A stretch of DNA of 64,000 bases from sequence record MN988522.1; one strand, given 5' to 3'. Numbering within the stretch: the first letter of the stretch is position 1; each line of letters starts with the position of its first letter. The position numbers were made by a program, and so were the translations under genes. This document shows positions 27 through 61,844 of the stretch, one piece after another. Below the pieces are notes generated by a model. It was not told the origin of the DNA and searched no databases. It saw only the letters and a list, made by a program, of their open reading frames with translations.

Positions 27-67
27 TAGGTTCACTTCACGTCCTTAAGGGATTCTTCTTTGAAGGG
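27..67 (+). promoter_or_regulatory. Repeated bipartite promoter-like element, copy 1
   Basis: TAGGTTCACTT-cacgtccttaag-GGATTCTTCTTTGAAGGG; RBS and ATG 83 follow. Confidence 0.75.
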
Positions 68-82
68 TCGAAGGAGCCACCT

Positions 83-355
83 ATGTTTTACACGATCAAG
101 AAGAACTCTGAAAATTCGGATTATAAAATCTCGTCGTTCAACGACTATGAAACTCATCCGAACAATACCTACGAATTAAAAGTCAGAGGTAGAGCAGTCT
201 ATTGCAATTGTCCTGCAAGTAGACATGCTTGTCGTCACGTACAAATGTACTGGCGTACTAAAGAACAGAGTCTCCTTGATAAGCCTAACCTCATCGACTT
301 CACTAACAATAGTGAAATGATTGTCAAACCTATCAAAGCTTTCATCGTGGAGTGA
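83..355 (+). CDS. SWIM-type zinc finger protein
   Basis: YCNCPASRHACRH fits CxC-xn-CxH; AAGGAG RBS. Confidence 0.55.
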   Translation: MFYTIKKNSENSDYKISSFNDYETHPNNTYELKVRGRAVYCNCPASRHACRHVQMYWRTKEQSLLDKPNLIDFTNNSEMIVKPIKAFIVE

Positions 356-614
356 ATCATGGCTAAGCCTACATGCTGCTGGATAATCCGTCCTGCCTCC
401 TATAACAAGGAGACTGGTGAATCTGTTAAGGCTATCTATTGTGGTAAGCCTGTACGATACAAGATTGAAATTGACGACGATATGAATAAGCGTCGTAAGT
501 ATAACAATCTTTGTGATACTCATCAGAAGGAGTCTGATGAGATTTCTAAGAATAATCCAGAAGATGATGACTGGAATTTTACCTGATCATCATAAATAAA
601 GGAGACAACCTGAA

Positions 615-1130
615 ATGAGACTAGTCGTAGCTGTTAGTCGGAATGACGTCATAGGTACAGAGTTGAATGGTAGACATATCATTCCATGGAGTCTACCTTC
701 TGACATGACTAGATTCGCTAGACTGACGAATGGTCATACGATGATATGTGGGAGGAGAACATATGAGTCTCTTCCATCATCTTTTGATCTCGGCAATCGA
801 GATATCATTGTCATGACTCGACAAGGCCGTATGAAATCTTCTGATCCTCGTATTCGTTATGCGAATAGTCGGACTGATGTCATGGAAATGATTCAAGGTG
901 AGGAAGATCGTACTGCAGTCATTGGAGGATCTGAAGTTTATGCTCAGTTCGTCGATGATTGCGACGAGGTATGCATCACATTCGTTCAAGTAGAAGTTGA
1001 ATACGGTACAGCATATTTTCCATCGAAGTTCTTGAAGTCAAATGGATGGACTCCGATGCTTACTCATATTGAACGTCATGTTGACGATGAGTACGATACT
1101 GTATTCCAACATTACAAGAGGTCGTCATGA
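615..1130 (+). CDS. folA: Dihydrofolate reductase
   Basis: VAVSRNDVIG, IPWSLPSDMTRF, ICGRRTYESLP and IGGSEVY are DHFR motifs. Confidence 0.9.
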   Translation: MRLVVAVSRNDVIGTELNGRHIIPWSLPSDMTRFARLTNGHTMICGRRTYESLPSSFDLGNRDIIVMTRQGRMKSSDPRIRYANSRTDVMEMIQGEEDRTAVIGGSEVYAQFVDDCDEVCITFVQVEVEYGTAYFPSKFLKSNGWTPMLTHIERHVDDEYDTVFQHYKRSS

Positions 1131-1439
1131 AGTATCATTTAGAGATTTTCAGTTTCATCAACGATCGTGATCGTCTGAAACGCGATAATCCTCTACTTCC
1201 TGCAGGTCCTGTACTGAAAGGAGAAACTCTGTACACTATTCGAGATATCGTGTCTGATCGGTATTTCAATTGGTGCTACATTCACCAGCACTCAGCTGAA
1301 TTCATCATGAAGAAGATGATGGAGAACTGGGAAGCTCATCCTGAGATGGTGGAGAGGAATCTGAAGTCGTCATTCTTACCGACTTATCAGAAATCTGTCC
1401 ACTCCACCCGTACACCTAGTGAATTGGAGGCTACGTTCC

Positions 1440-2216
1440 ATGAAACTGATTAAAGGTAAGGACTACTACGATAGTGCTCTTGCATTCGGACGAGATGAGT
1501 CTATCATCTTCGTACGTAAGAGTGAGACGCTGAGTCGTAAAGATGCCAGAGAGCGTCAACTATCCTATACAGGTATGCATTGGACTCCTACGATTTACAT
1601 GAAGAATCATCGAGGAGATACCATGAAGAATCATCGAGGAGATACCATCAAGAAAGATATGAGCACATGGAAGCATCCTGATGGTCATTCTATAACGATG
1701 GATGCGATATCTATACTTCTTGCAGGTAAGCTTTATCGTGGACTGAAGACCACCAAGAAGGCTCACTGGACTCATGGTAGTCTATCTGACGAGATTGAGA
1801 TCTTCTGGACTAAGGACTCTTTCACAAGATACATGAACAAGCACGACATGTATCCGTTTCAGTCTGAGTCCTTCACTCATCCGAATTCTACGATTGACAT
1901 GTACTTCTTGCCTGACAATCAGACTCAGCAGAAGACGATGGAGTTTATGATCGAACATAAGATGTCGATCATGACAGTTGACGATAGTGTAGGTGAGTGG
2001 CACGATCCTAATGGATATGTCGTCATCGATGGAGATAACCTGAAGGACTACTGCTTGCAGAAGATCGTAGGTCCGTATACGGTTATGCAGGAATTGTCAA
2101 TGTGGATCGGCGGTATACTACCGAGACCTGAAAAAGAAATTATTACTATCAACGATAAAAATAAGATTAGCAAGCATGGATTTGACAAATGGTCTTTCAG
2201 AAAAATGCCTAAGTGA
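1440..2216 (+). CDS. Hypothetical protein with internal 8-aa duplication
   Basis: ORF; ATG 1440 overlaps the end of the upstream gene; MKNHRGDT twice. Confidence 0.7.
   Translation: MKLIKGKDYYDSALAFGRDESIIFVRKSETLSRKDARERQLSYTGMHWTPTIYMKNHRGDTMKNHRGDTIKKDMSTWKHPDGHSITMDAISILLAGKLYRGLKTTKKAHWTHGSLSDEIEIFWTKDSFTRYMNKHDMYPFQSESFTHPNSTIDMYFLPDNQTQQKTMEFMIEHKMSIMTVDDSVGEWHDPNGYVVIDGDNLKDYCLQKIVGPYTVMQELSMWIGGILPRPEKEIITINDKNKISKHGFDKWSFRKMPK
1599..1646 (+). repeat. Perfect 24-bp tandem duplication
   Basis: atgaagaatcatcgaggagatacc x2. Confidence 0.95.
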
Positions 2217-3524: not shown

Positions 3525-3536
3525 ATGAACTCAGTG

Positions 3537-6289: not shown

Positions 6290-6309
6290 CATGCATCATA
6301 GGTGGAACC

Positions 6310-6882
6310 ATGATCTTTAGTCTTAGTAATTCAGAATACTTCAGTCTTGCAGATGCAGTATGCACAGCTGAAGACTCTCAAGGTCGAGTACCTGTTGACA
6401 AGCACATTGTCAAGAAGCTCATTGCATATCTGGAAGCAGACAAGTACTTTAATCTCGGTACAGTATGTGTAGCATTACTTCCTGTTGAGGATGGTCTTCT
6501 ATTGATTCGTCGTAATCGTCAAGGTGACCCTGGATTCGGTATGCTAGCTCTACCTGGTGGATTCCAGAAGGGTAGTAAAGCTCAGAATATGTACGATGCT
6601 GTCGTCGAAGAGGTACTGGAAGAAACTCGTATCCAGACTAAGCGAGATGACTACATACTCATGGATGGCGATACGGATGAGTACGAACATAATGTTCTAT
6701 TCTTCAGGCATATCGGTCTGCCAGGTAAAGCAGAAGACTACATCAAAGATTTTGTACCTCTGGACGATGAGGTATCTGAACTTGTTCATATCAAGAAGAC
6801 TGTTGAGACAGCTTTCCCTATGCATACTCGAGCGATCGATAGATTCTTTCAGGACGAATTCGTTAAAGATTTCCTCCCTTGA
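6310..6882 (+). CDS. Nudix hydrolase (ADP-ribose pyrophosphatase-like)
   Basis: LLLIRR, ALPGGF and degenerate Nudix box AVVEEVLEETRI. Confidence 0.75.
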   Translation: MIFSLSNSEYFSLADAVCTAEDSQGRVPVDKHIVKKLIAYLEADKYFNLGTVCVALLPVEDGLLLIRRNRQGDPGFGMLALPGGFQKGSKAQNMYDAVVEEVLEETRIQTKRDDYILMDGDTDEYEHNVLFFRHIGLPGKAEDYIKDFVPLDDEVSELVHIKKTVETAFPMHTRAIDRFFQDEFVKDFLP

Positions 6883-6883
6883 A

Positions 6884-6924
6884 TAGGTGCAGTTAGGTCC
6901 TTCGAAGGCTTCTTCCTTGTAAGG
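6884..6924 (+). promoter_or_regulatory. Repeated element, copy 2 (GGCTTCTT variant)
   Basis: TAGGTGCAGTT-N12-GGCTTCTTCCTTGTAAGG upstream of the gene at about 6970. Confidence 0.7.
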
Positions 6925-6969
6925 CCTTCGAGCCTTCTCCACCATCGTTTTAAATTGCAGGAGAATGAG

Positions 6970-7839
6970 ATGTCAATGGCTATTGATCATTATCTTCCAA
7001 TGAGGTATACCAATGCTTTCTGGTATACTGAAGGAAGTATCCTTCACTTCGGTCGTGAGTACTACCGACAGTATGGATTCTGGAGAGTCGAGAGTAAAAT
7101 CCTCGTACGTGTCGATATGGAAGGGAATGAGATCATTCCTATCGAGACACAGAAGATTCCTGAGACTCCTCGTGGATGGCATCTCGTTCATGCGGGTACC
7201 AATCGGTATCCTGTGCAACCTCTTGTCATTGCTCATGACAAGAATGCTCTCGAGAAGTATCTGGAAACTCCGGATGAAGTAGTCATCGAGCGAGAGCGTC
7301 TCGCAGATGAGGAGAGAGCTCGTCGTCAACGAGAATATGATGAATGGTATGCCAATGCATCTGATCTCGAGCGACGTCTTCGTAGTTTCGACTGGACCTA
7401 CGAGATGGCAGATCGTCCTCCGAATCTAGGACCTGCTCTGCAGAAGATGTGCGATGAACTCGAGAAGCTTCCTTACGAGGAAGCTAAGGCGATCTGGAAT
7501 AAGTACTACGTCTCGAAGGTCGGGATTATGTACTTCCCAGATTTTCGTAAGTGCGAAGGATTCAAGTATCCTGAGGTCGCACTTATCTCCTACTCGTACA
7601 AGGAGCATAAGCTCAATAATCACGAGAAGTGGACTCTCTGGAGGAATGGAGTCGAGGATGTAGTCCGTGAAGGTACTCCTCGCAGGTACACGCATGAGAT
7701 TGATCGTCTCGGAGAAGCTCTCCGACATCTTCTCAATACGGGTATCATCCGTCTGGATACTCCCATCTTCACTGAAGGTCGTCAATGGTCGACTGTAGGT
7801 GAACTCTCTATCTTCCAGAAGAAGGATCAAGCAGCATGA
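6970..7839 (+). CDS. Hypothetical protein
   Basis: Long ORF with CAGGAG RBS, downstream of element copy 2. Confidence 0.7.
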   Translation: MSMAIDHYLPMRYTNAFWYTEGSILHFGREYYRQYGFWRVESKILVRVDMEGNEIIPIETQKIPETPRGWHLVHAGTNRYPVQPLVIAHDKNALEKYLETPDEVVIERERLADEERARRQREYDEWYANASDLERRLRSFDWTYEMADRPPNLGPALQKMCDELEKLPYEEAKAIWNKYYVSKVGIMYFPDFRKCEGFKYPEVALISYSYKEHKLNNHEKWTLWRNGVEDVVREGTPRRYTHEIDRLGEALRHLLNTGIIRLDTPIFTEGRQWSTVGELSIFQKKDQAA

Positions 7840-10566: not shown

Positions 10567-10608
10567 TAGGTGAACTAGAGCTCCCTAAGAGATTTCTTCT
10601 TAGGGAGC
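10567..10608 (+). promoter_or_regulatory. Repeated element, copy 3 (degenerate), overlapping a GCTCCCTAAGA/TCTTAGGGAGC hairpin
   Basis: TAGGTGAACTA-N12-AGATTTCTTCTTAGGGAG upstream of ATG 10642. Confidence 0.55.
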
Positions 10609-10641
10609 AATCCCGTTTAACTCAACTAGGATTTCACTACT

Positions 10642-11892: not shown

Positions 11893-14373
11893 CTCTGAGG
11901 GAGATCAGATCGAACAAGCGATCGCTGAATACTTCCAGATGAAGCATAGTGGAACTAGTTTCACTGTTAGTGAACCATTCAAGTTCACGATTGAGACTAC
12001 TCGACGAGAGAAGACATTATGCATTGCTGAAGATAAGATGCATCGTGGTGGAGTGACGATGTGGTACGCAGAGGATCAAATACTACCTGATCCTGAAACT
12101 GCTACTCTACGTGAAATTTCTGACGCAATCTCCAGATTGCAGAATCTTGTTCTCAATAGTAGTGCAGGTTCTGCTAGAGATGATGCTGTCAAAGATCGTG
12201 ATCGATTGAATAGAGCTATCACAGTAAAGATGGGATCACACAAGGCTATGGAGTATCTTGGAGGTATTCTTCATTATCTCCAAGATCTGCATCCAGATGA
12301 TCAGTGCAAAGCATATGACGATGCTCTGTTCTTCTACAACTTCCATAATCCCAACTCACGAGTAGAACCTACTGGTCTAGGCTATACTAGTCTCGTGCAG
12401 CCTTCCTTGTTAGGAGACGATAGTGAATCGCGTTGATAAGATTAAAGCATTGGATAATGCTACTGAATGCAAGTGGTACGTCGATATCGCATTTGACGTA
12501 GGTACCGCAGAAGCTCGTACTATGATGTACGGATCAGAAATGAATCGATGGAAGTTCAGTGGATCACCTGATGATCTTGACGAACTTATCGACAATTCTC
12601 TCCAAGCTGCTTATGAAGAAGTAGTAGAACATAAAGTTAAGCTGTACTCTGATATGCCTTGTCATGACTTTCTACCTGATGATCGTAATCTGATGAACTC
12701 GTACGATAATGCATCTTTCCATAACCTAGAACATCTGTGGGTAGGACTATGAGTGGATTTGAACGTATTAAACCTGAAGATATTGACGTAGGCGTATACA
12801 TCTGGTATGGTGGACAGATGTCAGTATCTGGATGGGATTGCCCAGGTATCATCTATGAGGTCAATGAAGAGGAGCAATGGTTCCGTATCCAATCTCTAGA
12901 TGATCTCAATAAGAATGAACAGAAGTATGAGTTCGTACCTGATGATCGTAGTGCTACGTCTAGTCTTACTATTCGTAAGATTTCTGTTGAGGAGGCATTC
13001 GACTATGTCCGTAAGATTAAGGATGCTAAGCATTCTCGTATCGGTGATGTCGAAGAGACTCTCCGTAAGGCTAAGCAGGATGCACTGAATTTTCAGGTGT
13101 TCTTTGACAATATGAAGAAAGAGATCAAGAATGTTGAATCTGTCTGAGATTAAGGTAGGAGACTACCTGTGGATGGAATTTGAATTCGAAGATGACTATC
13201 CTGGACGAGAGGATATTGATGAGCCTCTCAGAATTATGGCGATCAATGGAAATGTTCTTCTAGTAATGTACTTGAAGAGTCTCTCAGGTACATTACGATC
13301 GATTGATCTTGATACTATTCATTCTCGTACTAAATTGTACAAACCTACTACTGACAAATTGAGATCATTCCTGCTTCATCTTGCTGCTAAGACGAGAGAT
13401 CGTATTGAGGCTTTGAAGAAAGAGAAGAGTGACAACGATGTTCTCCTTAATAATACTCGTAGCATTCTCAAAGAATTGATGGAATCAGATGATGCAAGCA
13501 AAGCTACCGTATGATCTTGTGATTGACAATGATACTATGTGGTTCGCAGGAGATGATGTCAAGTTTGAATGCCATGTATGGAGTGACGGATCTATGTCCA
13601 TCATGATACATCGAGGTACTGAATCTGTTCTTCTCCATTTTGATAACATCAGTGAAGCTGAAAAGTCAGGATGGAATGTATGATGTATAATACGAATCTC
13701 GGATTCTGGGTAGATCTCAATCAGATCGCTATGATTAGTGAGTTCCTCAAAGGACGAGATCATCATTCGATTAAATTCTGCATATTGTACAAATATAGCT
13801 CTCAAGAAATATGGTACGAGTACGGAGTATTTGGTGACTCTACTCCGTACTTCATTCAGAAGAAGATGTATGAAGCATACAGGAAACTGAATGAAGCTTA
13901 CGATTACAGTGAGATACCGAAGTTTACGACTGAGTTCTACCTCGAGATGTTTGAAGACTTGGTAGAGTCTATCGAAGAGCATCTTATCAACCTTATTAAT
14001 GAGAAGATTAAGCACGATGCTAAGTAAGAGATTCTATGATACTGGTCTGGGATTTTATGTCGATCTCGAGCATATCCAAGCAGTTTCTAATGCTCAGGAT
14101 ACTCATCGATATGGTGAAGTGTGTTTCTCGATAAAGTACATGATGGGTGCAGGTAATCACACATTGTATAACTTTAGTACGTACTATGGTGATACTGAAT
14201 TCGAGAAGGAAGTACTCGCAGCTACCAGAGCACTTTCAGACTCTCCTGAATGGAGAAAGCTCACTCAAGATCCTGACAAGAGGAGAATGCTAAGTAGAGT
14301 TACGATACCTATTCTCCAAAAGTACATTGACAGGATGTGGGAAGCTAAGAGCGAATTCCTCTCATCACAATAG
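11879..14373 (+). other. Block of small hypothetical CDSs, including a clear (13680/14017) and a weaker (12749/13131) tandem paralog pair
   Basis: Coupled ORFs; shared motifs Y[ND]T.LGF[WY]VDL and [IV].VG.Y[IL]W. Confidence 0.65.
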
Positions 14374-14411
14374 GTTCACTTAGGGTCCTAAGAGGATTCT
14401 TCCTTGAAGGG
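14371..14411 (+). promoter_or_regulatory. Repeated element, copy 4
   Basis: TAGGTTCACTT-agggtcctaaga-GGATTCTTCCTTGAAGGG; ATG 14447 follows. Confidence 0.75.
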
Positions 14412-14446
14412 TGCGAGGGCATCCGAAATTCAACGGAGAAAAGATT

Positions 14447-15025: not shown

Positions 15026-17612
15026 ACGTGGAGAAGCAGTAAAGGAGTCACACGTGAATGAAGTGAAATCAGAGATCTCCCTATCGGACAAGTCTGTTAA
15101 GGAGATCGACCAGATCATTCTTGAGAGATGTCACGAGATCGAGAGTGAACATGATGGAATTGACCATGATGTAGCTCTCGCTCAAGCGACTGAAGAGATC
15201 GTCAAGAAACTGTCTGAAGAATTTCGAGCAGTCTAATGCTGGAAGTGCTCAGCTTTAAACTAGTAGCTACGGGTATTTATTATATCCGTAGCAGAGGTAC
15301 CGAAAGAGTAGGCAGTAGATTCTACGACACATCATATGTCAATGAGTCTACTGCCAATCTTTTAAAGGATTTTCTCATCAAACGATGGGAAGAATGTCCA
15401 ATTGAGCGAATTACCGACCTAAGAGACTTCTTTGTTATACCTCATGGGCATATCTCCTTCTCATCTATGACACCTAAGGAATTATTTGACTCACAATTTA
15501 GTCGATTCAAATTTGGTACATCTAAGATGAAGAGAAACGTTATGAAACATCTAATTGGATTGTATCCAGATTTGAAATAGTACTAATGAGCTTTACGCAT
15601 AAAATTATCTTTATTGTAGTTATAGTTTTGACGATTGGATTCACTTCATTGTTCCTGTTCGACGAATCCATGTACTACCCATCAAATAGGTTGAGACAAG
15701 TATGTAGACCTGTCTCCCAGAACAAGTGCGCGATTTATATCTACGAGGTCAAATAATGAAAGCTAAGCATGTCTCTGATGAACGTAAGCTCTATGATCTC
15801 TGTAAGGAATTCATCGAAGAGCAGTTTATCCATGACAAGGATGATGCTGAATGGGTCACTGAAGATGACAAATTTAAGTTCATCATGAAAGTTTGTGAGA
15901 TCGTAGGATTCAAGGAATTGGTGAAATGAAATTACTAGGTGAGACTATCGAAGTCACTACATCAACTGTCTTCAAGGGTGAGCTAGGTACTGTTATCGAA
16001 CAGTCGAGAACTACTCTGACAGTAGACTTCGATGGTCGCATCGGTAAGTATGATCTGTTCAAGAATGAGTTCATCGTCTACAAGAACTTCAAACTCGAGA
16101 GACCAGTCGAATTGATCAGTCTCAAATCTATCGAAGGAGAACCAGTCTATGCAAAGTACTCAGAACGAGTCGTGCGACCGATTAAGTGTTAAGAGACCTG
16201 ATCCTATGGTCTCTCCTAGTCGTCCTCTCACGAATGATGAGAGATACCATCTCATCAAAGCTTCTCAGAGGACTCAGTCGGATTATCCTAAGGTACGTCT
16301 CTGGTATGAATACTTCAGAGACAGTGGTCAGTGCAGCATGATGGATACTCAATACGTTATCTCGATCGCTATCACAGCGATGATCCAAGATGAGCTCGAA
16401 TCCAATGAAGTATGATCAGAATTTATACAGCAAATACGGATACTGGATTAAGTCCGACGGTACAATTCTATACTTGGACTCGATCTACGGTCACAACGAT
16501 CTCGCTAAGGAGAGTGGTGACTTCGATCCAAGTATGTCTGGTCATGACTGCTATTCTGCAGCTATCGACAGTGGATGGATTCGGATCAATATCAGTGCGT
16601 ATACTGCAGCATGGGGACTTCATTGGAACTATGCTGAAGCCAAGATCACTGATGAAGCAGTCAAGGGATTCAAGCATCTGATTAGATTGCATGGACCTCA
16701 TGAAGTCGATACTGGTGTAGCTCTCCAGATTCACTACAAAGATGCGATCGAACTTATGCAAGGTCGGATGAGCATCGATCAATTGAATGAGAAAATCAAG
16801 AAGAAGGAAGATGAATATTACTGACACTATTTCATGGTATCTCACGTTTGTTACTACTGTATCTTATTTGATGATACTGGTTGTAATGCGAGTCCATTAC
16901 ATTCATAATTATTCAAGAGATACAAGATGGTACTATGCATCGATGATGATCATCTTTAGTATTCAAGGTACGGTCGGATTGATGCTTCTCATGATTCACA
17001 ATGGAGTTATTAGATGAAAAGATACAGAGAGTGGCGATATGGATTCCGAATAGGTACCAACTATTCGGAGTTATCCAATGTCAAGTCAAAGTGGAGGATC
17101 TGGATTCGTATGTGAGTCCATGAGTCCTCAGCGCATGCCTAATATGAAGGCATTCAAACCATTCTGCTTGTGCTGTGTAGGTAAGGTATATCGTAAGGGA
17201 TACGTTCTCAGCAAAGCTAAGTCTCGATTTAAGAATCGTCGACTTCATCGCGGTAAGCCTCGTTATAAGGATCATCGCGCATAATGTCTAGGACCACGAG
17301 ACTCTGCAAACCTTATATCATTTACTACAATTACCATAACCTCGGAGATCCTGATCCTCGAGATGCGTCTCAAAATGGACGTGATGGTAGTAAGTACAAG
17401 AGTGCACTGTACGACGATTACATTAAACAACCTGGATGGTCTCGAGATCATTATACAGGAATTGGTCAACGTCAGTGGAAGAAGAAATGTGCTCGTCGTC
17501 ATCGTCGACGTGAAGATCTTCAGATTGTCTGCAAGGAGACTCTGGAGTACTTTCATGACGACGAATTCAGCGTTGATGAGCCTTCCTCTTTGTAAGTAAG
17601 AATATATTTTAT

Positions 17613-17654: not shown

Positions 17655-18244
17655 ACCTTATTGGAGCATCAATGAATTACAACATTGACACGACTGAAGC
17701 AGAGCTACGAGAACAGCTTCAGCAGAAGAATCGTGAGATAGATCTGAAGTCACCTGATCTTCCCGATTTCACAATCAGCAAGAACATGAAGAAAGATCGG
17801 GATGATCTCAAGAAGTATCTTTACTTCTTGATCAGTAATCAATCCGATTTTGTCAAGACACTTTACAAATACAGTGACAAGACTATGGAGATGACAGTCT
17901 CTTCAGACGAGTGTGGATGGAGACCTAAGTCACATATCTCTCGTGTCGTATGTAACTTGAATCTGAAGACTCTTAAAGTCACGTACGAAGCATATGAGAC
18001 TTCATTTGGTATTCTCAATTCATATGCGAATCGTCCAGTTGAACATAAACTTATATTCAAGTACAAGTTTATTATTCCTCCATCTGCACTAATGAAGCTT
18101 ACTGAAAGATTCGAGAATGCTGCATGTGAGTGTATGAAGAAGCTCGAGATCGATCGTGAGATTGCTAAGAAGAAGCAAGATGAGAAGGATCGTCTACTCG
18201 GACTGATTGACTTTGAGGTAGAGCAACAATTAAATCGTAAGTCG

Positions 18245-18284
18245 TAGGTGCAGTTAGAGTTCTCGAGGGATTCTTCTTTGAAGG
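18245..18284 (+). promoter_or_regulatory. Repeated element, copy 5
   Basis: TAGGTGCAGTT-N12-GGATTCTTCTTTGAAGG; ATG 18315 follows. Confidence 0.75.
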
Positions 18285-21412: not shown

Positions 21413-21453
21413 TGGGTGCAGTTGTGGGCTCAGAAGGATTCTTCTTTGAAGGG
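21413..21453 (+). promoter_or_regulatory. Repeated element, copy 6
   Basis: TGGGTGCAGTT-N12-GGATTCTTCTTTGAAGGG; ATG 21536 follows. Confidence 0.72.
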
Positions 21454-44198: not shown

Positions 44199-44239
44199 TA
44201 GGTTCACTTAGCCTCCTCAAGGGATTCTTCTTTAGAGGG
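44199..44239 (+). promoter_or_regulatory. Repeated element, copy 11
   Basis: TAGGTTCACTT-N12-GGATTCTTCTTTAGAGGG; ATG 44277 follows. Confidence 0.75.
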
Positions 44240-44751
44240 TCCGGATCGTCTGGGTCCTCTGGAAAAGGAGAATCGTATGTCAATGGTTGTGTCTCTGTAT
44301 CGTGCTAAGTTTTCTAGCAAGTTCGCAGGATCTGGTGAGTTTCCGATCTATGCTTTGAACTTGAAGGATGCTGAGGATCGTGCTGAGAAGATCTTCTTCC
44401 TCATGAATGTGAAGGTCGATGGTGATACCTTCACATCTGAAGTCGCTCTGGTTGAATTCTGAGGAGAACGATCTTGTACATTAATGGTTGGATGACCAAT
44501 GTCAATGTGAGTGAGATTGCTCAGACCAAGAAGTTCATCGAGGAGAACGATGGTCTCGATCTCAAGGTCGATACAACTGGTGCTAATGGTCCTGAGTACA
44601 AGTGGACCCAGTACTGCGATGACGATGAGGACATGGTGAAGATCGCTGCGGTCATGATGTTCTACAACGATCGTAGTCCTGAGCAGATCGAGGAGTTCAA
44701 ATCTGATCTCCGTGAACTGATGAAGAAGTATCCACGTGTATAACTCAATCT

Positions 44752-46093: not shown

Positions 46094-46136
46094 TAGGTGC
46101 ACTTGAGGTCGTAGAAGGATTCTTCTTCAGGAAGGG
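46094..46136 (+). promoter_or_regulatory. Repeated element, copy 12
   Basis: TAGGTGCACTT-N12-GGATTCTTCTTCAGGAAGGG; ATG 46177 follows. Confidence 0.75.
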
Positions 46137-46669: not shown

Positions 46670-46711
46670 TAGGTTCAGTTAGGGTCCTAAGAGGATTCTT
46701 CCTTAGGAGGG
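46670..46711 (+). promoter_or_regulatory. Repeated element, copy 13
   Basis: TAGGTTCAGTT-agggtcctaaga-GGATTCTTCCTTAGGAGGG (spacer identical to copy 4); ATG 46755 follows. Confidence 0.75.
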
Positions 46712-49700
46712 CTTGAAGAACCAGCCCAGAGAATTGTCTTTAAGGAGAAATGCAATGAACAAGATTTCTGAAGTAGTCCGCGATGTTGAGTTCACCTTTT
46801 ATTGCACTGGTGGATTCCGTACGAAGGACATGACAATCTTCGCTAAAATTGATCAGCACTTCTTCAATGAAATCTGTGCTCGTCAGTACGCTAACTTTCC
46901 TAAGCAGCTTCCTCTGAAAGGTAAGGAGACTGCTGATGGTGTACTGATCGGATGGCTCGATTACAAGAAGAATCGGTACCATGCTGAAACGACTATCGGT
47001 CACGCGATGTACTACAATCGTCTTCGCGATACGATCTAAGGAGAATAAATAATGGCTGACAAGTCAAAAGATAAGGATCGTGAGAAGAGATCTCGTCGTT
47101 ATGCTGATCTCGTCTCGAGGTTCTACTCTCGTCAGGTAGAAGGAGACTTGGATAAGTCTCTGGTGAATGCTTACATCTCCAGTCAGTCTGCTCCGTCAAT
47201 GGATCTCGTTGACGTGATGGATGCTATTGTCGCGTATGGTGATGCGAGAGTAGCTGAAGCTAAGCAGAAATGGAAAGGATCTAAGTGATGGCTAAGAAAC
47301 GTTCTCGTAGCGACGTAGTCTACTCGATCGCTAATCTCTTGATCGTACTCGGTCAGGAGAAATCAATTGTGGATCTGATGAATCAGGTTCTCGCCTATCA
47401 GGACGTGACAACGGACGATGATCTCGAGATTCATCTCAGAGCGATGATCAAGCCTGTCGAGTCTGACTGGAAACTCAAAGGATCCAAGACGAAGATGGAC
47501 GATGAAGTAATCGTCGAAGTCGATCCTTATCTCGAAGGGATTAAGGATCGTGGTCAGTAATAAAACGAATCTCGTAGCAGAATCTCCTGAAGAGAAGATG
47601 GAGAATCTCGCTCATGAAATCTGGGCAGTAGCTCAGACATCTCCAGGTGAAGGTATCGAGGATGGAGTACAGCGTATCCTCGATCTTCTGAAGGAGACTG
47701 TCATCATGAAGATGGATGACAAGGATATGGATATCGAGAACGATCCTACATGGGATGAGTTCGAGATCCCTCGTCCTCCTAAGGAGTGGAAGTGATGGCC
47801 AATCGGATTAATCGTGGGATCTACAAGTTCACATACAAGAATATCAAATTTGAACTGGAGAGATATCCTGATAGATCCTGGCATCTTTTCTACGAAGATG
47901 AGTCTTGTCCTCGTGAGTGGATTAATGACTACAGTACTAAGAGACTAGCAATCACTCGAGCTAAGGAGATGGCAGACAATGGCTCACTCAGTTGATCGTC
48001 AGGAAGATGGTACCATTGTTGTCACATGGGACAATGGACGTAAGACCGTACGTACTGCTAAGTTCAGCAGTGATTCTATCATGCGTACGGATCCTCTTGG
48101 TGGACTAGTGAAGGATCATACGGACGATGAGATCTTCGCCTATGCTCAGTACTCCATCAAGGCGATCCGTAGAATGAAGAGATCAATGAAGGGATTATTG
48201 TAATGGTTTATCATGCAACTGAGGCTCATCGAATGGCATGTCAATATGCTAATGAGATGACGGATATTGAGTATCCGGATGTTGCTCGAGCTAGTGATAC
48301 GAGTGACTCTCATGAGTACTGGCTGAAGATGTACGACGAGAAGATTCTGGAGCAGATGAAGAAGTCTGTCATGGAAGAGAATAACAATGGCTGACTATAT
48401 CCGACTCTATCGTCCTGAAGGTAAGGGAGTATGTCTCGAGTTTGCTCGTGCGAACGACTATGAGACTGCTACCAAGTTCGCTGATCTCTTCAAGGAGATC
48501 ATGCCTAAGAAGTTCAACTGGTTTCATCAAGGTGGATATACCTCCAGTGGTGAATCATCGGACTGGCATCTCTTTGAATTCTGGGGATATGATAGTAATC
48601 CTCTCAGGATCCGATGCTACTGTGTAGTCCTGGCGGACATGTTGGGACTATCGCTGATGATCCATGACTCTGCAGGAGAGGCTGTGACGATATGATCAAG
48701 ATATACATTCAACGTATAGGCTCTCAGAGCGGTGACCACCTTATTCAGGAGATTCCTGAAGAAATAAAGATCAAGGATTGTCATGTAGATCTCGAGAGAC
48801 TGTTCCAGAGTGTCTACAATCTTGGTCGACGTGATGAGCGTGATGAGATCAATAGCGATCTCATTCAATTAATGAACAGGAGACGTTAAGATGATTTATC
48901 GTGTATGGTACTGGTCGTCCAATGGATACTGGAAGCATTTTCAGGATCATGAGAAGGTCGAAGCTGCAAATGAGTGCATGGCGATCTTGATGAGACCTGA
49001 TAGTCTCAAGCCTGGACTGATGCATATCGTTCCTAAGAATCATCCGTTCACTGATCGTGTCGTTGACATGACTGAAAACTTCTACATTCCTGAGGATGGT
49101 GAGGACTTCGTACCTTCTGAAGGTCAGATCATCTACGGTCAGAAAGCGATTGATGCATTCAATCCGACGTTCAATGTCGTCAGTAAAAAGTCCTCATGGT
49201 CTCCAATGGTAAGGAAGTACGACTGGTGATTGAAGAAACTCACAAGAATCATCCTGGAGTGACTGCTAGTGAATGTCCTGCCAGGATCACTGTTAATGCT
49301 CAGCCATCTTCCAACCATGGCAGTGGATACGCATGTAGTGTAACTGGTGGTCATTGCATACCATCATCCGACTGTGATGCTCGGAGAAAGATCTGGAGGG
49401 ATCATAATGAAGTTCAAACGTGAATTCTATACTGTTGAGGATAGCACAGGTAAGCTGATCCTCATTCGAGATGAGATCGGATCGTACATCTTCATGTTGA
49501 AGGAAGTGATCGAACGTCTCGAACTCCAGGATCAGATCGTAATGGACTCTGATCGTCGGCATCTTGTAGGAGTCTGTGTAGATTGGCATCTACCTACTCC
49601 GAAGATCGTACCTGTGTCCGTCGAAGTTGAGATCGTTGTCAAGGAGTCTGCATAATGTGGAAGTGGCTATGTGGATTCTTTGGTTCATTCGAGGATCCTA

Positions 49701-52706: not shown

Positions 52707-52762
52707 ATTCAGCTTATTCCAGTGGGATAAGCCTTCCTAGTTGTGAAGGAATATGGAGACTA
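52707..52762 (+). repeat. Second repeated leader element, copy B
   Basis: ATTCAGC-(hairpin)-AGCCTTCCTAGTTGTGAAGG-AA-TATGGAGACTA. Confidence 0.6.
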
Positions 52763-55103: not shown

Positions 55104-57452
55104 AATATTTCCAATGCGATCTCTCCCAAGGTACTGGACGTACTACTGCTTACATTGAAGAGCGTGGTGCTAAGGTAGGAGCATTCGTAGAAGTGAAGGA
55201 CGAGAACTTTAATGGACTCTGGAGAGTCGATCAGGTCTCAGATCATGGAGTAGAAGGTGAACATCTTCGTGACCTCCAGAAGAACAATCGTAACATCTTT
55301 GGCTCTATTGCTCCGAGGACTTAATCAATGAACGATCGTGGCAAGGCACTCTGGAAAATTCTAGAGGATGCAAGAGATAATACCGAACAACGTCTCAGGG
55401 AACATGGATTCGCAGGTAACTTGATTGCTATCCGTGCTAAGAAATGTCTCGTCAAGGGATGTATGAACGAGTCTGATCAAGGTACATTCATAGGAGATCT
55501 CTGCTTACCTTGCCACGATATGATTACTACTGGTAAGATTCATCATACGAATCCTACTTTTATCGGTGATCTTCAACGTCAGATAGGAAAGTATGACAAG
55601 ATTGCTAAATTTCATCAACAATTCATGGAGGTAATGAAGGATGAGTGATCGATTTGTTGCACTCAGACATGTTCTGAACGCTATGATCAACAATGAGAAT
55701 ACGGACTGGTGTGTCAGTGAACGTAGTGCAAATACTGCTATGAAACTGATCGATGTTCTGGAATTTGCTAATGCTGAAGCACCTTTGATCTTACCTGAGG
55801 ATGGTCTAGTCGTTCTCACATACACAGATCGTACTAAGAAATACTTCATCCGATGTGATGAGGATATAGATATTCAGGTACTGGAGAAGTCAAATGTCAG
55901 ATCAAACTGAAGAAAAGCTGGTAGAACGATCCGAGTACTACACAGTAGAAGTACGTACTTGGCATCTTCATGAAGTTGGATTACAACGTGAGGTCGATGC
56001 AGATGTATGGAATGATTGCATCTGGCATTTACTATTCGACTCACCTGGTAGTGTTTATACTCAGAAGAGTGAAGCTATCGACGTACGTAATCGAATCGTT
56101 AATGAGGCTCACATTCCCTCAGAGGATATTAGAGTTACTCGAGTCATCCATGAAGTATTGGATATTGAATGAAAATCTCATCCATGAAACCTCTGATGAG
56201 TACAGAGGATCTTAAAGATTACAATTACTCTATCGCAGCTATTACTACTGAAAGTGTAATGGTGATGGCAGACCTATTTCAATTTCCTCCATCTGAAGAT
56301 GATATCATTGACTTCATCAAGAAGGTCGAAGAAGATCCTGATATGGTTCAGTACGGTGAACTCACTGTAGGTCTAGGTGACCAAGAGTTTACTGAATGGG
56401 TACGATCAGTTGTCAGTGATCGTTTCGATGAAGTCACGATGGAAGATCATAAACGATTGAACTAACTTAGGTCACTAGAGCCTTCCTAGTTACTAGCGAC
56501 CTCATTGGATATTGTGATGACAAATATTAAAGGATATCTACCAGGATTCCTGATTCTAGCCGTATGTTTAACGATTACTTTCGTAGCTAAACATTATTAT
56601 AATCCTGCTCCTGTGCAGGTATTTGATTATACGAAGAAGGAGTCATCGAATGGATGCTCATAGTCATCTCGAAATGATCATACAAGAAATCATTTATGAG
56701 CATGGAGGATTCATCAAGTCAGTTAATCTCGTATCTCAAGTCTATGGTCGACTGTCAACGACTTTTAGTAAGGACATCATTACAGAAGAGATGTTCAAGG
56801 AACTTACTGAAATCAATCTTGTCGAGAAGTTGAATCAGATGGTCACTGACAAGAAACTAGGTGAGATTGAGTACTCAGATATGAACTTAGCTTATCGTAT
56901 CAAATCTGTTTACTATAATCCTGAGATTACTAAAGATGTTAGGATTGTCCAGTGAGCGATCAGAGTAAGAATCTGAAATGGCCTGAGGATCATGACCCTA
57001 ACAAATTTCTATTCTCTGTGCATGGAGTATTTGCACTAGCACCTGATGGTTATATCCAGAGGAAATATAATGGTATCAAAACTCGTGACTCTGATAGCCT
57101 TGTGCATGATCATCTATGTGATAGTGATGGTAAGGTAGACATGATGAAGCTGAAGCAACTTCTGATCGAAGCACGTCAGCACGGTTATGCAACTGCTAAG
57201 AATGAAGTCACGTATGCTATTACACGTACGACATTCAAAGGAGTACCAGGACTTGATACAGAGTGATAATCGTAGATTAGCTCAGCCTGGAGATCAGTCT
57301 CATCGAGTATGGGTCATTATTTATGAAGATGCAGATATGAGTACTGCAGTCTTTACAGGACCTGATGCAGAGAAGGAGGCTCGTGAGCAGTATGAACGTA
57401 GTAAGATCGGATGGAATTGTTATCTGATGTGTACTGCATATGAGGAAGCATA

Positions 57453-57704
57453 ATGCCTGCATCATATTTAAATGATACTATCCATCGAAAGAGTTATCAT
57501 CGAGTAGCTCAACTCCGTGCTACTCATGGATACACTCAGAAACAAGTAGCTGAAGCTATCAACATGAGTCGTGACCATCTTGCATCTATCGAGTCGGGTC
57601 GTTGTTGGATGAGTACTAAATCACTCGTCAATCTCTCAAGATTCTATGGTGTCTCGACTGACTATCTACTAGGACTCTCTGATGTGAGGACTAGAGCAGC
57701 ATGA
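57453..57704 (+). CDS. XRE-family helix-turn-helix regulator
   Basis: LRATHGYTQKQVAEAINMSRDHLASIESG...YGVSTDYLLG. Confidence 0.9.
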   Translation: MPASYLNDTIHRKSYHRVAQLRATHGYTQKQVAEAINMSRDHLASIESGRCWMSTKSLVNLSRFYGVSTDYLLGLSDVRTRAA

Positions 57705-58102: not shown

Positions 58103-58140
58103 AGGCCTACTAGGAGAGATCTTAGTAGGCCTTTTCTTTT
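58103..58140 (+). terminator. Rho-independent terminator just upstream of element copy 14
   Basis: AGGCCTACTAGGA-GAGA-TCTTAGTAGGCCT then TTTCTTTT. Confidence 0.8.
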
Positions 58141-58148
58141 ACCCTCAG

Positions 58149-58189
58149 TAGGTTCACTTAAGGTCCTGGAGGGATTCTTCTTTGAAGGG
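58149..58189 (+). promoter_or_regulatory. Repeated element, copy 14
   Basis: TAGGTTCACTT-N12-GGATTCTTCTTTGAAGGG; AAGGAG RBS and TTG 58224 follow. Confidence 0.75.
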
Positions 58190-61100
58190 AGCGTTGTGCT
58201 CCGAGTCTTTAAGGAGAATTGTCTTGAGGTACAAGTTCGAGCATCAGTCTGTAATTCCTGCATCCGACTTCGATCCTGATGGATTGGACATTGTCTGGAT
58301 CGACGATACCTATGCGTCGGCAGATAGCTTGGATACGATTTCCAAGTACATGTGCTGCGAAGTCAATGAGATCCAGCAGTATACTTCTGTTGAGGAGATC
58401 TGAGATGGCTAAGCTTGATCGTGCAAAATGGCCTACTCTGGCTAAAGCATTTGATGACTACGGACATTCGTATAAGTTCGACGATATGTTCGATGCGAAG
58501 GTACGTAGCGACAGTAACTACGTAGTCCTCTGCTGGAAGATCGACGAGGATTTCTATGAGATGGCTGATCTCGCTAGTGATGGGAATGGTAATTGGGAGA
58601 TGCAGAACGACATGTTCGATGGCATCAGTCTCAAGCAGTGGAAGTCCCTGAAGATCACTCCTCAGTGTGACTGGTTTACTTACGATGGGGACGGTAACTA
58701 AGATGATTCTTCTCGTTAGAATGTTCTTATTCTCAGTTCGGATCTATGAGTTCTTCACTGGAGACAAGTCAGGTCTCGAAGTCCTCATCAAGGTACGTGA
58801 GGATAAGTGGGACAAGTATAAGTCTGATCTCCTGAAGGATGGATTCGTCTTTCATGAGATCGATGGAACAATTCGTGTGACCAATGTAAAGTTCAATGGA
58901 CGATACGTTGAGGTCATTGCTACGAGAGAGGATGCAGCATGAATGGTCTTGAGAAGCATCGTCGAGAAGCTACCGAGTATCGTATGAAGTACGAGAATGG
59001 GATTGATCCCCGTAAGGTCAAGCGATATGAAGCTTCTCATCTCGATCCTGTCCATTGGGCATACGTCGAAGGATCTGATGCTGGATACTTCAACTATGGT
59101 AATCGTAATCCCTATCCTCCTGGTCGTCGTCATGACGAATACAATCGTGGATATGAAATCTCAAAGGATGAAGCATAATGGCTAAGAATAAGCAGGACAA
59201 GAATAATACTCTTGTCAACTTCATGGATGTCTTCAATGATATCTCTGAGGAGAATCGTCGGAAGGATAATGAGTATCTCAAGCTTCGTACTGAGTCGTTT
59301 GATAGTGATTGCGAAGACATTATCAAAATGAGCGACTTTGATCTCATCGACTACCTCAGCTCTTATCGAGGATATAGCGATCCTCGTATCGTTGAGATTG
59401 AAGGTAAGCTTAAGGAGGTAGCATTCAATGAAGCACTCAGGAGGATGAAACATGGCGATCAAGCTTGATGCTCGTATGGGAGAGTATACTGGTCGTCAAG
59501 GTATCTCATATCTGTTCAAGGATGAGAAGGGATATCCTCATCGTCTCGCAGCAGCTGAGATTAAGGACATTGATCTCAGCGATCTCGTACCTGGTCATAA
59601 GGTATGGCTAGAGAACTGGAAACATCATGGTGGCATCACTCAATGGTATGCTACTCCTAGACACATATAAGGAGACTATCATGCAACATCGTTATGTGAA
59701 TGAACGTAGGATACCTGAACCAGTCACAGGATCGGATATGGTATCTGCACTCATGAGCTATTGTGAGGAGTACAATGTCGAGATCGAAGATATCGTCATC
59801 CTCGCAGATAAGATGGATGCTGATGTAGGTCATATAGCTGATGCTATCATTATCTGCACTCGTCATCTCGGAGACGAGGTGGATCCCTCCTAGTCCCCAG
59901 GAGGACCCTTCGTGGAAACTAACTCAAAATAAAGCATAAAAGGAGTAAAGAAATGTCTTTCATCATGGCGTGGGTCACATTGATCCTCGTCTTCCTTCTG
60001 TACTGCGTAGGTATCATAACAGCGGTAGCTATCTTCTTTCTACCATATATTTTGATCGGTATCGTTTCTTATTTAGTTGTAAGAATCCTTACTAAAGCTG
60101 CCAAGTAGGAGACGTGGATGAGCATGAAATTTCAGGAAGGTATGCACTTCAAATTGGAAGGAGCTACTCTGAAAGGTAAGAATAGGATTCGAGATAACGG
60201 ATCTGAATGGCAAGTCGTCAGTGTCAAGGATGGAGAAGTCTTGTTCGAATCTGTTCTGACAAGCTATCTGAAATGGCATCCTCTCAATGAAGAATCTGAC
60301 TTCATTGTAGTTGAGAGAATGCAGGATGTCGAAGATGTGAATGACTCGATCGAAATCGAAGGTCATTTCCTATAAGGAGTAACGAAATGCAATTCGAAGT
60401 CAATCTGAATAACTATCCTGTTATGCGTAAGGCATTTCAGTTCATCGAGGTAGACAATGGTGCAGGCATTATTCCTGGAGTACCTCTGAAGAATTCATAT
60501 GTCGTTGATTTGAGTGATGAGTCTTCACTCGAAGAGATGTACGGTATGCAGTCATTCTCAGATAATGGTGCAGGTGCTCTCATGAATGCTGTCGAGGCCA
60601 CTCTTGCTCAGATGAGTGATGATGAACTTCTTACATTCTGCACAGGTGGTGATCATGAAGTCAAGATGATCGCCGAGAAGTACGAGTATGGCGCTATCGC
60701 TAGTGAGTTTCTGGATGCATGGTTCGAAGGTCACTTCGATGAGACTCCAAGATTCACATGGCATCAGGTCTGGTACTTCACTAAAGTTTATCCTGAGACT
60801 GTTACTCCGGATGAAGCATATGAAGCATGGGTCAAGGAGAATCCTGACCCTAATGGCATGACAACCTACAACGAGGAAATATGGGAGGGTGATGAGTCCT
60901 GGGTTAAGTCAGTTTGTAGACTACTTCGAGTTGAACTGACTGATTACATTCCACCACCGAAGGATGAAGGTGATGAACCGATCAATACTGAGAAGGTTAA
61001 CCAGTGAGGAGTACGAAATATCTGGTCCAGAGAAATACTGGATGAGATTGTACATATTGCCGATAGCTTCTATCTATTTTATATCGGCAATACTTCTATT

Positions 61101-61201
61101 TCCATTCTATGGACCGTCTATTTTCAGGACGGTCCAGGATATGATCAAGAGTCACTTCAATAGTTAGTAACGAGTTGATGCGTTTGAGTATTTGAATAAG
61201 T

Positions 61202-61240
61202 GGCTCTAGGCGAATCATTGTGCCTAGAGCCTTCCTTTTT
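61202..61240 (+). terminator. Rho-independent terminator
   Basis: GGCTCTAGGC...GCCTAGAGCC then TTCCTTTTT. Confidence 0.7.
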
Positions 61241-61265
61241 ATTAGAATAACATTGAAAGTTTAAA

Positions 61266-61784
61266 ATGCAGTCTTTTGGATATACAATACTAGCTCTCGT
61301 AGTAATTCTTATTCTCTACAAGATCATCAGATCACTTATCGTTCATGAGCAGAAAGCATCTGAATCAACCATTGACAATGGATACAATCTTCCGATCAAA
61401 GAAGCAGTTGATACGTCGATCAGTACGAGGACTACGACGTCTACTGCTATACGTCGTCAACCTGAGCATCGTAGACAGGAAGTCAAGTCTGAGAAACGTC
61501 AGTCATATGACAATGATACGGTTGCCACTTCATACGATGATAATTCGGATACTGTAACTGCTGCAGTTATCTCAACGATCCTCTCGATTGAATCCAACAA
61601 TTCTAGCTCGTCTCATTCAGATCATTCAAGTAGCTCGTCGTCTTCTCACTCAGATACCTCGAGTAGTTGGTCGTCATCTCACTCGGATAGTTCATCTTCT
61701 CACTCATCGTCTTACGACTCAGGATCGTCCAGCTCATACGACTCTGGTAGTAGCACGTCAGACTCTGGTGGTGGAGGATGGTAG
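61266..61784 (+). CDS. Membrane-anchored protein with Ser/Asp-rich tail
   Basis: N-terminal TM helix; C-terminus SSSHSD/SYDSGSS repeats ending GGGGW. Confidence 0.75.
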   Translation: MQSFGYTILALVVILILYKIIRSLIVHEQKASESTIDNGYNLPIKEAVDTSISTRTTTSTAIRRQPEHRRQEVKSEKRQSYDNDTVATSYDDNSDTVTAAVISTILSIESNNSSSSHSDHSSSSSSSHSDTSSSWSSSHSDSSSSHSSSYDSGSSSSYDSGSSTSDSGGGGW

Positions 61785-61803
61785 GCGAATTTATTTTAAC
61801 GAA

Positions 61804-61844
61804 TAGGTTCACTTGAGGTCGTTAAGGGATTCTTCTCTGAAGGG
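61804..61844 (+). promoter_or_regulatory. Repeated element, copy 15
   Basis: TAGGTTCACTT-N12-GGATTCTTCTCTGAAGGG; ATG 61878 follows. Confidence 0.75.

Follow-up and report, generated by a model that had tools for sequence, protein, structure and literature searches.

The first 64,000 nucleotides of the genome of Rhizobium phage RHph_TM40 (MN988522.1; 207,431 bp; Kleczkowskaviridae, genus Cuauhnahuacvirus) contain a repeated, strand-specific element of about 44 nt, which we term C1 (the TAGGTKCASTT-N12-GGATTCTTC family) and which lies in the gaps ahead of genes. Having analysed this whole stretch (hereafter the window, identical to bases 1-64000 of the record), we think it likely that the C1 elements are phage-genus-specific promoters, acting at the level of DNA on a bacterial-type multisubunit RNA polymerase. 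A phage-specific promoter class had already been proposed in a first-pass annotation of the same DNA, and orientation, a position in gaps before strong ribosome-binding sites, selection, the sharp limits of the family, an adjoining terminator, the absence of the element elsewhere and the lack of enrichment of sigma70-like sites all lend indirect support to that part of the proposal; the accompanying description of two boxes around a free spacer did not survive. The data show the number, orientation, position and fixed spacing of the copies, selection on their boxes, the leader hairpins and a stereotyped ribosome-binding site; from these we infer promoter function, start site, timing and reader.

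The + strand genes of this phage form a single long array (genes 1-329, from position 83 to ~159 kb), in which ~170 small genes, mostly of unknown function, come first and are followed by nucleotide-metabolism, replication and tRNA genes, while the virion genes (the late module) occupy the - strand at 159-207 kb. Motif counts were made over the whole genome on both strands, with C1 positions numbered from the T of TAGG as 1. A pattern scan confirmed the motif at each of the coordinates first proposed, as 14 strong copies plus a degenerate one at 10567. The 14 window copies, all on the + strand with 0-1 mismatch, compare with 0.03 expected from shuffles, and the single - strand match in the window, at 63143, has three mismatches and is noise. 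Over the genome as a whole the count is 17, rather than the 15 from which "at least 15" transcription units had been deduced, and 17 of 17 lie on the + strand, in keeping with the single orientation first claimed; the late - strand module holds none. A weight matrix over 44 positions, applied to the whole genome as the first-pass annotation had suggested, revealed a sharply bounded family: the 17 copies score 46-62 bits, the degenerate copy 18 bits, and all else on either strand less than -3. The copies, together with the features directly attached to them, are as follows.

27..69, + strand: C1 copy 1, heading the first + strand gene (83..355); 60.7 bits.
6884..6926, + strand: C1 copy 2, with the box 2 variant GGCTTCTTC; 50.6 bits; begins 1 nt past the stop of gene 6310..6882, the next gene being 6970..7839.
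10567..10609, + strand: degenerate C1-like copy, TAGGTGAACTA-N12-AGATTTCTT; 18.3 bits; ahead of a PurA-like gene.
14371..14413, + strand: C1 copy 3, its TAG doubling as the stop of gene 14017..14373.
18245..18287, + strand: C1 copy 4, its TAG doubling as the stop of gene 17672..18247.
21413..21455, + strand: C1 copy 5, a TGGG variant, followed by a 97-nt structured leader ahead of the gene at 21542.
27074..27116, + strand: C1 copy 6, its TAG doubling as the stop of gene 26624..27076; contains a perfect GTTC-N7-GTTC; next gene 27145..27339.
29998..30040, + strand: C1 copy 7, overlapping the final 13 nt of gene 29747..30010.
32217..32259, + strand: C1 copy 8, its TAG doubling as the stop of gene 32004..32219.
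34974..35016, + strand: C1 copy 9, with GGATTCTTT as its box 2.
44199..44241, + strand: C1 copy 10, with the top score (61.8 bits); of all copies, it is the one whose box 2 is predicted to pair most strongly with the ribosome-binding site (RBS) in read-through RNA.
46094..46136, + strand: C1 copy 11; the relative RHph_TM21B lacks the 136 bp directly 5' of it (45958-46093).
46670..46712, + strand: C1 copy 12, with a leader, GAGAATTGTCTTTAAGGAGAAATG, in common with copy 11.
58103..58141, + strand: intrinsic-terminator-like hairpin (58103-58132) and T-tract, ending 8 nt before C1 copy 13.
58149..58191, + strand: C1 copy 13, followed by the RBS AAGGAGAAT and a TTG at 58224.
61804..61846, + strand: C1 copy 14, a pattern match in a gap.
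107114, 142528 and 154094, + strand: C1 copies outside the window, from the whole-genome scan.

The distance between the two boxes, measured with loosened box definitions, is 12 nt in 17 of 17 pairs, as the invariant spacing originally reported would have it, and the exact box 1 never occurs without box 2. The spacer, which had been thought to vary in everything except its length, turned out not to be free sequence: it carries 0.3-1.0 bit of information per position and a consensus of its own (A-R-G-G-T-C-Y-T-n-R-A-R, most clearly ARGGTCY). Positions 0 to about 43 are conserved without a break, as A-TAGGTKCASTT-ARGGTCYTnRAR-GGATTCTTC-YTTGRRGGGnS. C1 is one contiguous block of about 44 nt, in which the spacer constitutes a third, weaker element that is common to C1 and to a second motif family, C2, described below. 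Within box 2, the hexamer GATTCT (positions 25-30) has A at its second and T at its sixth place in 16 of 17 copies, so that the A-11/T-7 pattern noted for it stands for all copies except that at 6884, which has GCTTCT instead. The "mini-hairpin" into which box 2 was said to run (CTTC-N3-GAAG) was rejected: although 79% of cells pair, 72-78% still do so after a 1-3 nt shift of the 3' arm, covariation is that of shuffles, and the appearance of a stem reflects composition only, a pyrimidine run followed by a purine run. In the degenerate copy at 10567, box 2 lies within the loop of a 9-bp hairpin.

All 17 copies lie at least 70% outside annotated coding sequences (CDS), in an array whose + strand is only 8.9% non-coding, and in 15 of them the end of box 2 is 24-57 nt from the next start codon, which agrees with the first placement of the copies in or at the edge of gaps, 5' of an RBS and start. 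There are 80 gaps of 40 nt or longer on the + strand, and C1 fills 17 of them, mostly within 0-62 kb. In five copies the TAG of the motif doubles as the stop codon of the upstream gene, and a sixth overlaps the end of a gene by 13 nt. At 58149 the terminator reported 8 nt upstream could be confirmed as a hairpin with a T-tract (58103-58141), and copy 1 heads the entire + strand array, just past a 730-nt non-coding region that borders the divergent late module. Terminator scans of 1-20000 and 44001-64000 reported none of the C1 copies there as an intrinsic terminator; genuine terminators in other gaps differ in form, ending in TTTTCTTTT. The pentamer CGAAT is found at most 40 nt upstream of 9 of the 17 copies (4% expected, P=5e-9), mostly at -17 to -20.

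Two observations on the surroundings of these copies may be added. The 730-nt region (genome 206702-207431), which adjoins window position 1 and separates the late and early modules, contains long AT-rich runs (TTATAATAATTATATAATAATTATAATTATTATAATATAATAA) and one C2 copy, and could carry a replication origin, packaging signals or more transcription signals. Downstream of copy 13 there is a likely unannotated open reading frame (ORF) of 59 codons (58224..58403), with a TTG start and AAGGAGAAT at a proper distance; the annotated next gene starts at 58405.

To assess selection on the element, we compared TM40 with the related phages RHph_Y65 (3.9% diverged) and RHph_TM21B (3.2% diverged). Both relatives keep all window copies in place, with no indel inside the element. 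The two boxes together show 0/520 substitutions and the spacer 7/312, against divergences of 2.6-3.4% in other intergenic sequence, 1.5-1.9% at second codon positions and 6-7% at third codon positions. The boxes are therefore more conserved than background (P=1e-8) and than the spacer (P=0.001), values that are indicative only because the Y65 and TM21B comparisons share ancestry. By this comparison the two boxes are under stronger purifying selection than every other class of site. Two genes directly 3' of copies (6970..7839 and 27145..27339) are hypervariable, with 29% and 26% nucleotide divergence from Y65, in flanks that are 1-7% diverged, and the C1 boxes adjacent to them are unchanged.

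Neither in Rhizobium nor in other genomes does the pattern turn up more often than chance allows. An exact-pattern scan of IMG/VR returned no C1 match, and in metagenomes together with one genome per bacterial species we found 45 single matches, all in CDS, without the extended consensus and unrelated to the phage. None of the 45 lies in a Rhizobium genome, so C1 is not a host promoter type. Among relatives fetched by protein homologues, only one locus was informative for C1. This is a Logan contig from run ERR1198915, found through a homologue of protein 325 (63% protein identity; see below), in which the orthologous gene is preceded by TGGGGTAACTA-AGGGCCTAGGAG-GGATTCTTC-gttgaggga; here box 2 and the 12-nt distance are kept, together with 9 of 12 spacer positions and 6 of 11 positions of box 1. 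The pattern, a single example, fits a core element (box 2) combined with a faster-evolving specificity element (box 1). Two further fetched relatives (L057 and L058) have only a NUDIX gene in common with the phage. In a further Logan contig, ERR11138852_30341, positions 1-24 are the remnant of a Nextera adapter (AGATGTGTATAAGAGACAG), which truncates the region of any homologous promoter.

How might such an element be read? The sigma70 consensus is TTGACA-17-TATAAT, with CTTGAC-N17-CTATAT as its rhizobial form. Across 1-20000 and 44001-64000, sites matching the sigma70 consensus fall below dinucleotide-shuffle expectation (38 vs 46.9 and 34 vs 47.7, respectively), and the same scan reports no site at any C1 copy. 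The hexamer AGGTKC (positions 2-7), 17 bp upstream of GATTCT, matches TTGACA at 1-2 of 6 positions. Since box 1 is so unlike a -35 hexamer, the reader is probably not host sigma70 acting in its usual manner. The contention that the motif resembles neither the sigma70 nor the T4 consensus is upheld by the failed -35 hexamer test, by a sigma70 scan that is blank at the copies and by a box 1 that is not a MotA box.

In the arrangement that we favour, box 2 (GGATTCTTC, positions 24-32) would be a -10-like element, with GATTCT (25-30) supplying A at -11 and T at -7, and transcription would start ~6-7 nt later, within the conserved YTTG-RRGGG at G36 or R37. Box 1 (TAGGTKCASTT, 1-11) would then fall at about -36 to -26, where it would replace the -35 element; the semi-conserved ARGGTCY (12-18) would fall at about -25 to -19, and CGAAT with a T-rich stretch, 10-35 nt further upstream, would lie in the UP-element zone. 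The transcript would begin with a short purine run, followed by a stable, copy-specific stem-loop and then by a stereotyped RBS, AAGGAGAA(T). The reader would be a specificity factor, whether encoded by the phage, delivered with the virion or arising from an unusual use of the host holoenzyme.

The leaders are consistent with this arrangement. When they are taken from position 36, 12 of 15 have a 5'-proximal hairpin that starts within a few nt of the 5' end; these hairpins have a mean z of -1.7 against shuffles (P=2.5e-5) and differ in sequence among copies. Their position argues for a start near 36-37. The RBS after C1 is indeed stereotyped as AAGGAGAA(T), with GGAGAA preceding 11 of the 17 genes that follow C1 compared with 15 of 292 other + strand genes (P=1e-9), and GGAGAAU preceding 6 of 17 compared with 6 of 292 elsewhere. 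A 5'-proximal stem-loop with a strong RBS is the expected form of a stable phage mRNA leader.

The closest known parallel in layout is provided by the middle promoters of T4, in which a MotA box near -30 is combined with a sigma70 -10 element and sigma is appropriated by MotA and AsiA. Like these, C1 has an upstream box of ~10 nt in place of the -35 element, ~12 bp from a -10-like hexamer with A-11 and T-7 (12 nt from box 1 to GGATTCTTC and 13 to GATTCT in 17 of 17 copies), and occurs in many gene-oriented copies within long same-strand arrays. Unlike them, it has TAGGTKCASTT where T4 has TGCTT, a -10-like box that is invariant over 9 nt and so extends beyond TAnnnT, and a spacer with its own consensus; in addition, MotA and AsiA domains are found in none of the 261 + strand proteins.

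Counting k-mers brought to light a second motif, AGCCTTCCT, with 26 copies on the + strand and two on the - strand. An alignment of 22 copies (21 on +, one on -) defines the C2 family, AGCGAA-N13-AGCCTTCC, which in extended form reads AGCGAA-N13-AGCCTTCC-YYTTGT. Placed in the 44-nt frame of C1, C2 reads T-C-AGCGAA-s-T-x / A-R-S-G-T-y...A-G / CCTTCCTyx / TTGT. The two families have in common the distance from box to box, the spacer consensus A12-R13-S14-G15-T16-Y17, A22-R23 and the core T27.C29-T30-T31..TTG, and they differ in box 1 and at positions 24-26. C2 heads another 20 of these 80 longer + strand gaps, none of them a C1 gap, which lie mostly at 52-149 kb, in the replication and tRNA region; in two copies the AGCCTTCC box ends 10 and 18 nt before tRNA genes (128439 and 137360). 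Its copies are as follows.

17558..17593, + strand: C2 with a weak box 1; a terminator follows at 17613-17646.
23790..23825, + strand: C2 in the gap 23792-23849.
52709..52744, + strand: C2 in the gap 52704-52765.
56458..56493, + strand: C2 in the gap 56465-56517.
61207..61242, + strand: C2 embedded in a terminator-like hairpin (61202-61231).
63822..63857, + strand: C2 embedded in the hairpin GGAAGGCT-TGAT-AGCCTTCC.
Genome 64865-148955 and 207185 (+ strand) and 160551 (- strand): aligned C2 copies beyond the window.

We considered whether C2 might be a family of terminators and rejected this, as strong hairpins are present in only 3 of the 21 folded copies. Since spacing, spacer consensus and a TTCTTYTTG core are common to both families, the reader of C1 is probably the same system as that of C2. 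In the late - strand gaps, TTTATAT(A/T) boxes precede structural genes, that of the major capsid protein among them, and may form a third, late promoter class.

160475-160586, 163741-163811, 198985-199077 and 206702-206800 of the genome, - strand: late gaps with AT-rich boxes of the TTTATAT(A/T) type.

The simplest picture would be one of three promoter classes on one map, in which a single polymerase would read C1 and C2 by means of related specificity devices. Map position alone would make C1 the early class, C2 would serve replication and tRNA genes, and TTTATAT would be late. In having two class-specific boxes at a fixed distance, C1 resembles the promoters of alternative and phage sigma factors (ECF, SPO1 gp28 and gp33-34), as it does in the presence of two classes, C1 and C2, that differ in both boxes at the same spacing in one genome. 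It is unlike them in that a sigma-family protein is undetected among the 261 + strand proteins. We know of no alternative or phage sigma class that matches the sequences and box-to-box distance of C1.

The phage does encode a homologue of a polymerase subunit. The product of 155072..158455 (+ strand; 1127 aa) is a full-length, bacterial-type beta' with Rpb1 domains 1-5, ~33% identical to bacterial RpoC, which scores 652 bits as rpoC against a family cut-off of 963; its gene comes third in the unit behind the C1 copy at 154094. A search with Pfam, PHROGs and NCBIfam found no beta subunit, sigma, MotA or AsiA among large unknown proteins, the neighbours of beta' or the 261 + strand proteins, and no relatives of this beta' were found in IMG/VR. 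Two genes upstream of beta' lies the gene for protein 325 (154167..154823, + strand; 218 aa), of unknown function. In the Vibrio phage Va2, whose fetched stretch is annotated with the same lone-beta' arrangement, a homologue of protein 325 (stretch 5254-5895, E=2e-9) lies three genes upstream of beta', so that the linkage is kept although the TM40 and Va2 beta' proteins are only 28% identical. The idea that protein 325 is a sigma region-4 helix-turn-helix was not supported (predicted local distance difference test, pLDDT, 57; no fold match; no Pfam signal). By terminase and beta', the closest phages are RP13, IME392, EP_H11, Ab1-TPeters, Va2 and the YerA41 group, at 28-42% identity.

Two of these phages have repeated gap motifs of their own. 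Va2 has GAACCY-N4-AACCTTGCTTCTTGAAT in four copies in 17.5 kb (stretch positions 5149, 6265, 11074 and 13266), and the E. coli phage IME392 has ACGAA-N16-AGCCCGTTCTTTTGGGTGGGG (also given as ACGAA-N16-AGCCCGTTCTTTTGGG) in five copies in 19.5 kb.

4044, 4399, 7867, 12977 and 16476 of the IME392 stretch: copies of this motif, some of them ahead of pieces of beta' genes.

These motifs seem to resemble C2 and the TTCTTYTTG core, which hints that the core may belong to machinery conserved across this clade. As a conjecture, an AGCC...TTCTTTTG core would be a candidate companion of the lone beta' gene across Va2, IME392, RP13 and the YerA41 group. Because IME392 beta' genes lie behind such motifs, beta' cannot be the sole requirement for reading them.

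A bolder version of the scheme, which we regard as rather doubtful, would have a hybrid RNA polymerase in which the phage beta' replaces that of the host and works with a factor unlike sigma70, possibly protein 325. C1 and C2 would then be the promoters of this enzyme, the TTCTTYTTG of C1/C2, Va2 and IME392 a signature of the clade, and box 2 an anti-RBS that silences read-through RNAs. The polymerases of phiKZ and AR9 offer a parallel, in so far as a phage encodes a homologue of a polymerase subunit and has motifs unlike those of its host; phages of those types, however, have genes for beta-like as well as beta'-like subunits, and their motifs are short and AT-rich, whereas TM40 has a bacterial-like beta' only, and a long bipartite motif. 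Promoters of the N4 type, in which a giant virion RNA polymerase reads a conserved DNA hairpin with a 3-nt loop, were rejected, as CTTC-N3-GAAG is not selected and neither a single-subunit polymerase domain (among the 261 + strand proteins) nor a gene for such an enzyme was found. Other small proteins possibly touching transcription are a DksA/TraR-type zinc finger (L003:1450-1662), a PC4-like coactivator fold that binds single-stranded DNA (L002:18531-18743) and an XRE-type helix-turn-helix protein (57453..57704).

Several points weigh against reading C1 as a promoter in the way that we favour. The copy at 6884 is conserved and yet carries C at the site of the putative -11 A, a change that would cripple a -10 element of the sigma70 type. 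If C1 were the earliest class, its reader would have to be present already at infection. Among the 261 + strand proteins, Pfam detected no sigma70-family, MotA, AsiA, gp55-type or single-subunit polymerase domain, and protein 325, for all its linkage to beta', gave no informative structure model. No mapped transcript 5' end and no paper on transcription were found in the literature for this phage, its genus or its beta'-bearing relatives. The selection test draws on two related genomes, which are not independent samples, and is indicative only. Lastly, virion DNA may hold modified bases, in which case the signal seen by a protein may differ from the letters. Proteins of the ComF-like, R2K ATP-grasp, 2OG-Fe(II) oxygenase and adenylosuccinate-synthetase-like kinds are associated with base modification, and genes for a ComF-like phosphoribosyltransferase, for R2K-type ATP-grasp enzymes and for a 2OG-Fe(II) oxygenase lie in the early region, near the divergent PurA-like gene (10642-11892). 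The latter, considered as a possible sign of a Z-base genome, scores 101 bits as PurA (cut-off 402) and 38 bits as PurZ (cut-off 300), and RefSeq relatives label its product a 2-amino-type enzyme.

The main rival retains a promoter and places it in another register, in which TARGGT (T11-A12-R-G-G-T16) would be a TAnnnT-type -10 element with a start at A22/R23. Box 2 (AUUCUUCUUU) would then be a conserved, pyrimidine-rich leader with which each transcript opens, pairing with the RBS (AAAGGAGAAU) and controlling translation or stability. We consider this unlikely, for all that the bases it requires are well kept in C1 (T11 in 17, A12 in 13 and T16 in 14 of 17 copies), with A22 and R23 conserved in both C1 and C2. 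The same -10 element would be poor in C2 (T11 7/22, T16 11/22), a -35-like element 17 bp upstream is absent, the strongest conservation would sit in transcribed sequence and at -21 to -11, which is unusual for a promoter, and the leader hairpins start right after position 36. Box 2 can indeed pair with the RBS: it is complementary, with G-U pairs allowed, to the stereotyped AAGGAGAAU, whose GGAGAAU form is so frequent after C1, and RNAs that contain box 2 are predicted to bury the RBS more deeply, with a mean unpaired probability of 0.25 as against 0.45 for RNAs starting at 36 (P=0.10) and 0.36 for those with a shuffled element (P=0.035). Sequestration is nevertheless a weak trend, clear in only 7 of 17 copies, and the pairing could equally act on read-through RNAs only. 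In the T4 lysozyme and soc genes, the read-through RNA hides the RBS and the promoter-proximal RNA exposes it; C1 resembles them in that box 2 pairs with the RBS only in RNAs that start upstream of box 2, and differs from them in the statistical weakness of the effect.

Less probable still is an operator, on which a DNA-binding protein, either a phage regulator or host LexA, would occupy GGTNC-like units ~11 bp apart (3-7, 14-18 and 24-29) on one helix face and switch the units together. The self-similarity of the element peaks at shifts of 10-11 and 20-22 nt, where GGTKC, GGTCY and GGATTC recur ~11 nt apart and the spacer GGTCY echoes the GGTKC of box 1, but this periodicity is not significant (p ~0.09). 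The alpha-proteobacterial LexA site is GTTC-N7-GTTC, which the copy at 27074 contains in perfect form; it is the only one of the 17 to do so, the others having GTKC and GTCC, GTCG, GTGT and similar. A helix-turn-helix protein is at hand in the XRE-type product described above. A promoter would still be needed, however, and no other promoter-like signal is present in these gaps; moreover, box 2, as the most conserved part and the one kept in the distant relative, better fits a core promoter element.

We give very little credence to an RNA-level element that would act on read-through transcripts, whether in processing, in antitermination of the boxA/boxB type or as a translational operator. Strand specificity, the complementarity of box 2 to the RBS and the overlap of many copies with the upstream stop codon, by which they are probably transcribed from upstream, would all suit such an element. 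Against this, the RNAalifold consensus fold of the C1 core has an energy of -1.7 kcal/mol with zero compensatory pairs, the CTTC-N3-GAAG hairpin is no better than its slid controls, Rfam has no match anywhere in the window, and copies 13 (after a terminator) and 1 (at the head of the array) leave a read-through signal little to act on.

Equally improbable, in our judgement, is that the copies are recombination cassettes that shuffle early gene modules in the style of the T4-type promoter-stem-loop, with promoter activity secondary: the region is highly mosaic (36 divergent segments in 64 kb relative to Y65), the divergent alleles of 6970..7839 and 27145..27339 start right after copies, the TM21B indel (45958-46093) stops precisely where the copy at 46094 begins and some copies have long leaders in common, but only 2 of 72 divergence boundaries lie near copies (~1.6 expected), an upstream stem-loop exists at one copy only and no copy changes place among the three genomes compared. 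T4-type cassettes and early promoters do resemble C1 as repeated, extended blocks with conserved flanks that stand before small, functionally uncharacterised genes where the early region is variable. C1 departs from them in showing no clear breakpoint excess in the comparison of three genomes, in having its sole upstream stem-loop, the terminator hairpin, at 58149, in the six copies that overlap the end of an upstream gene, and in not being sigma70-like.

One further difference between these genomes was noted. Y65 has an intact gene for an RtcB RNA ligase (Y65 stretch 4074-5477), to which the TM40 counterpart (53852-55084) cannot be aligned, being a 1.2-kb block with a 128-aa ORF and a homing endonuclease gene.

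Promoter codes carried by phages show how host transcription gets rewired, and earlier ones led to new kinds of factor, among them MotA/AsiA, gp55/gp33 and the phiKZ polymerases. The TM40 code is unusually clean, with 17 near-identical sites, a second class in the same frame and the usual readers undetected, and we know of no characterised precedent for a phage with a beta' homologue only. Should host polymerase alone read C1, the element would be a strong, non-canonical rhizobial promoter whose use would be limited to expression tools; the interest would be greater were the lone beta' itself a component of the reader. Confirmation of the map by start sites would turn the 44-bp element into a bait for the factor and would yield a transcription map of a 207-kb genome whose early genes mostly lack a known function.

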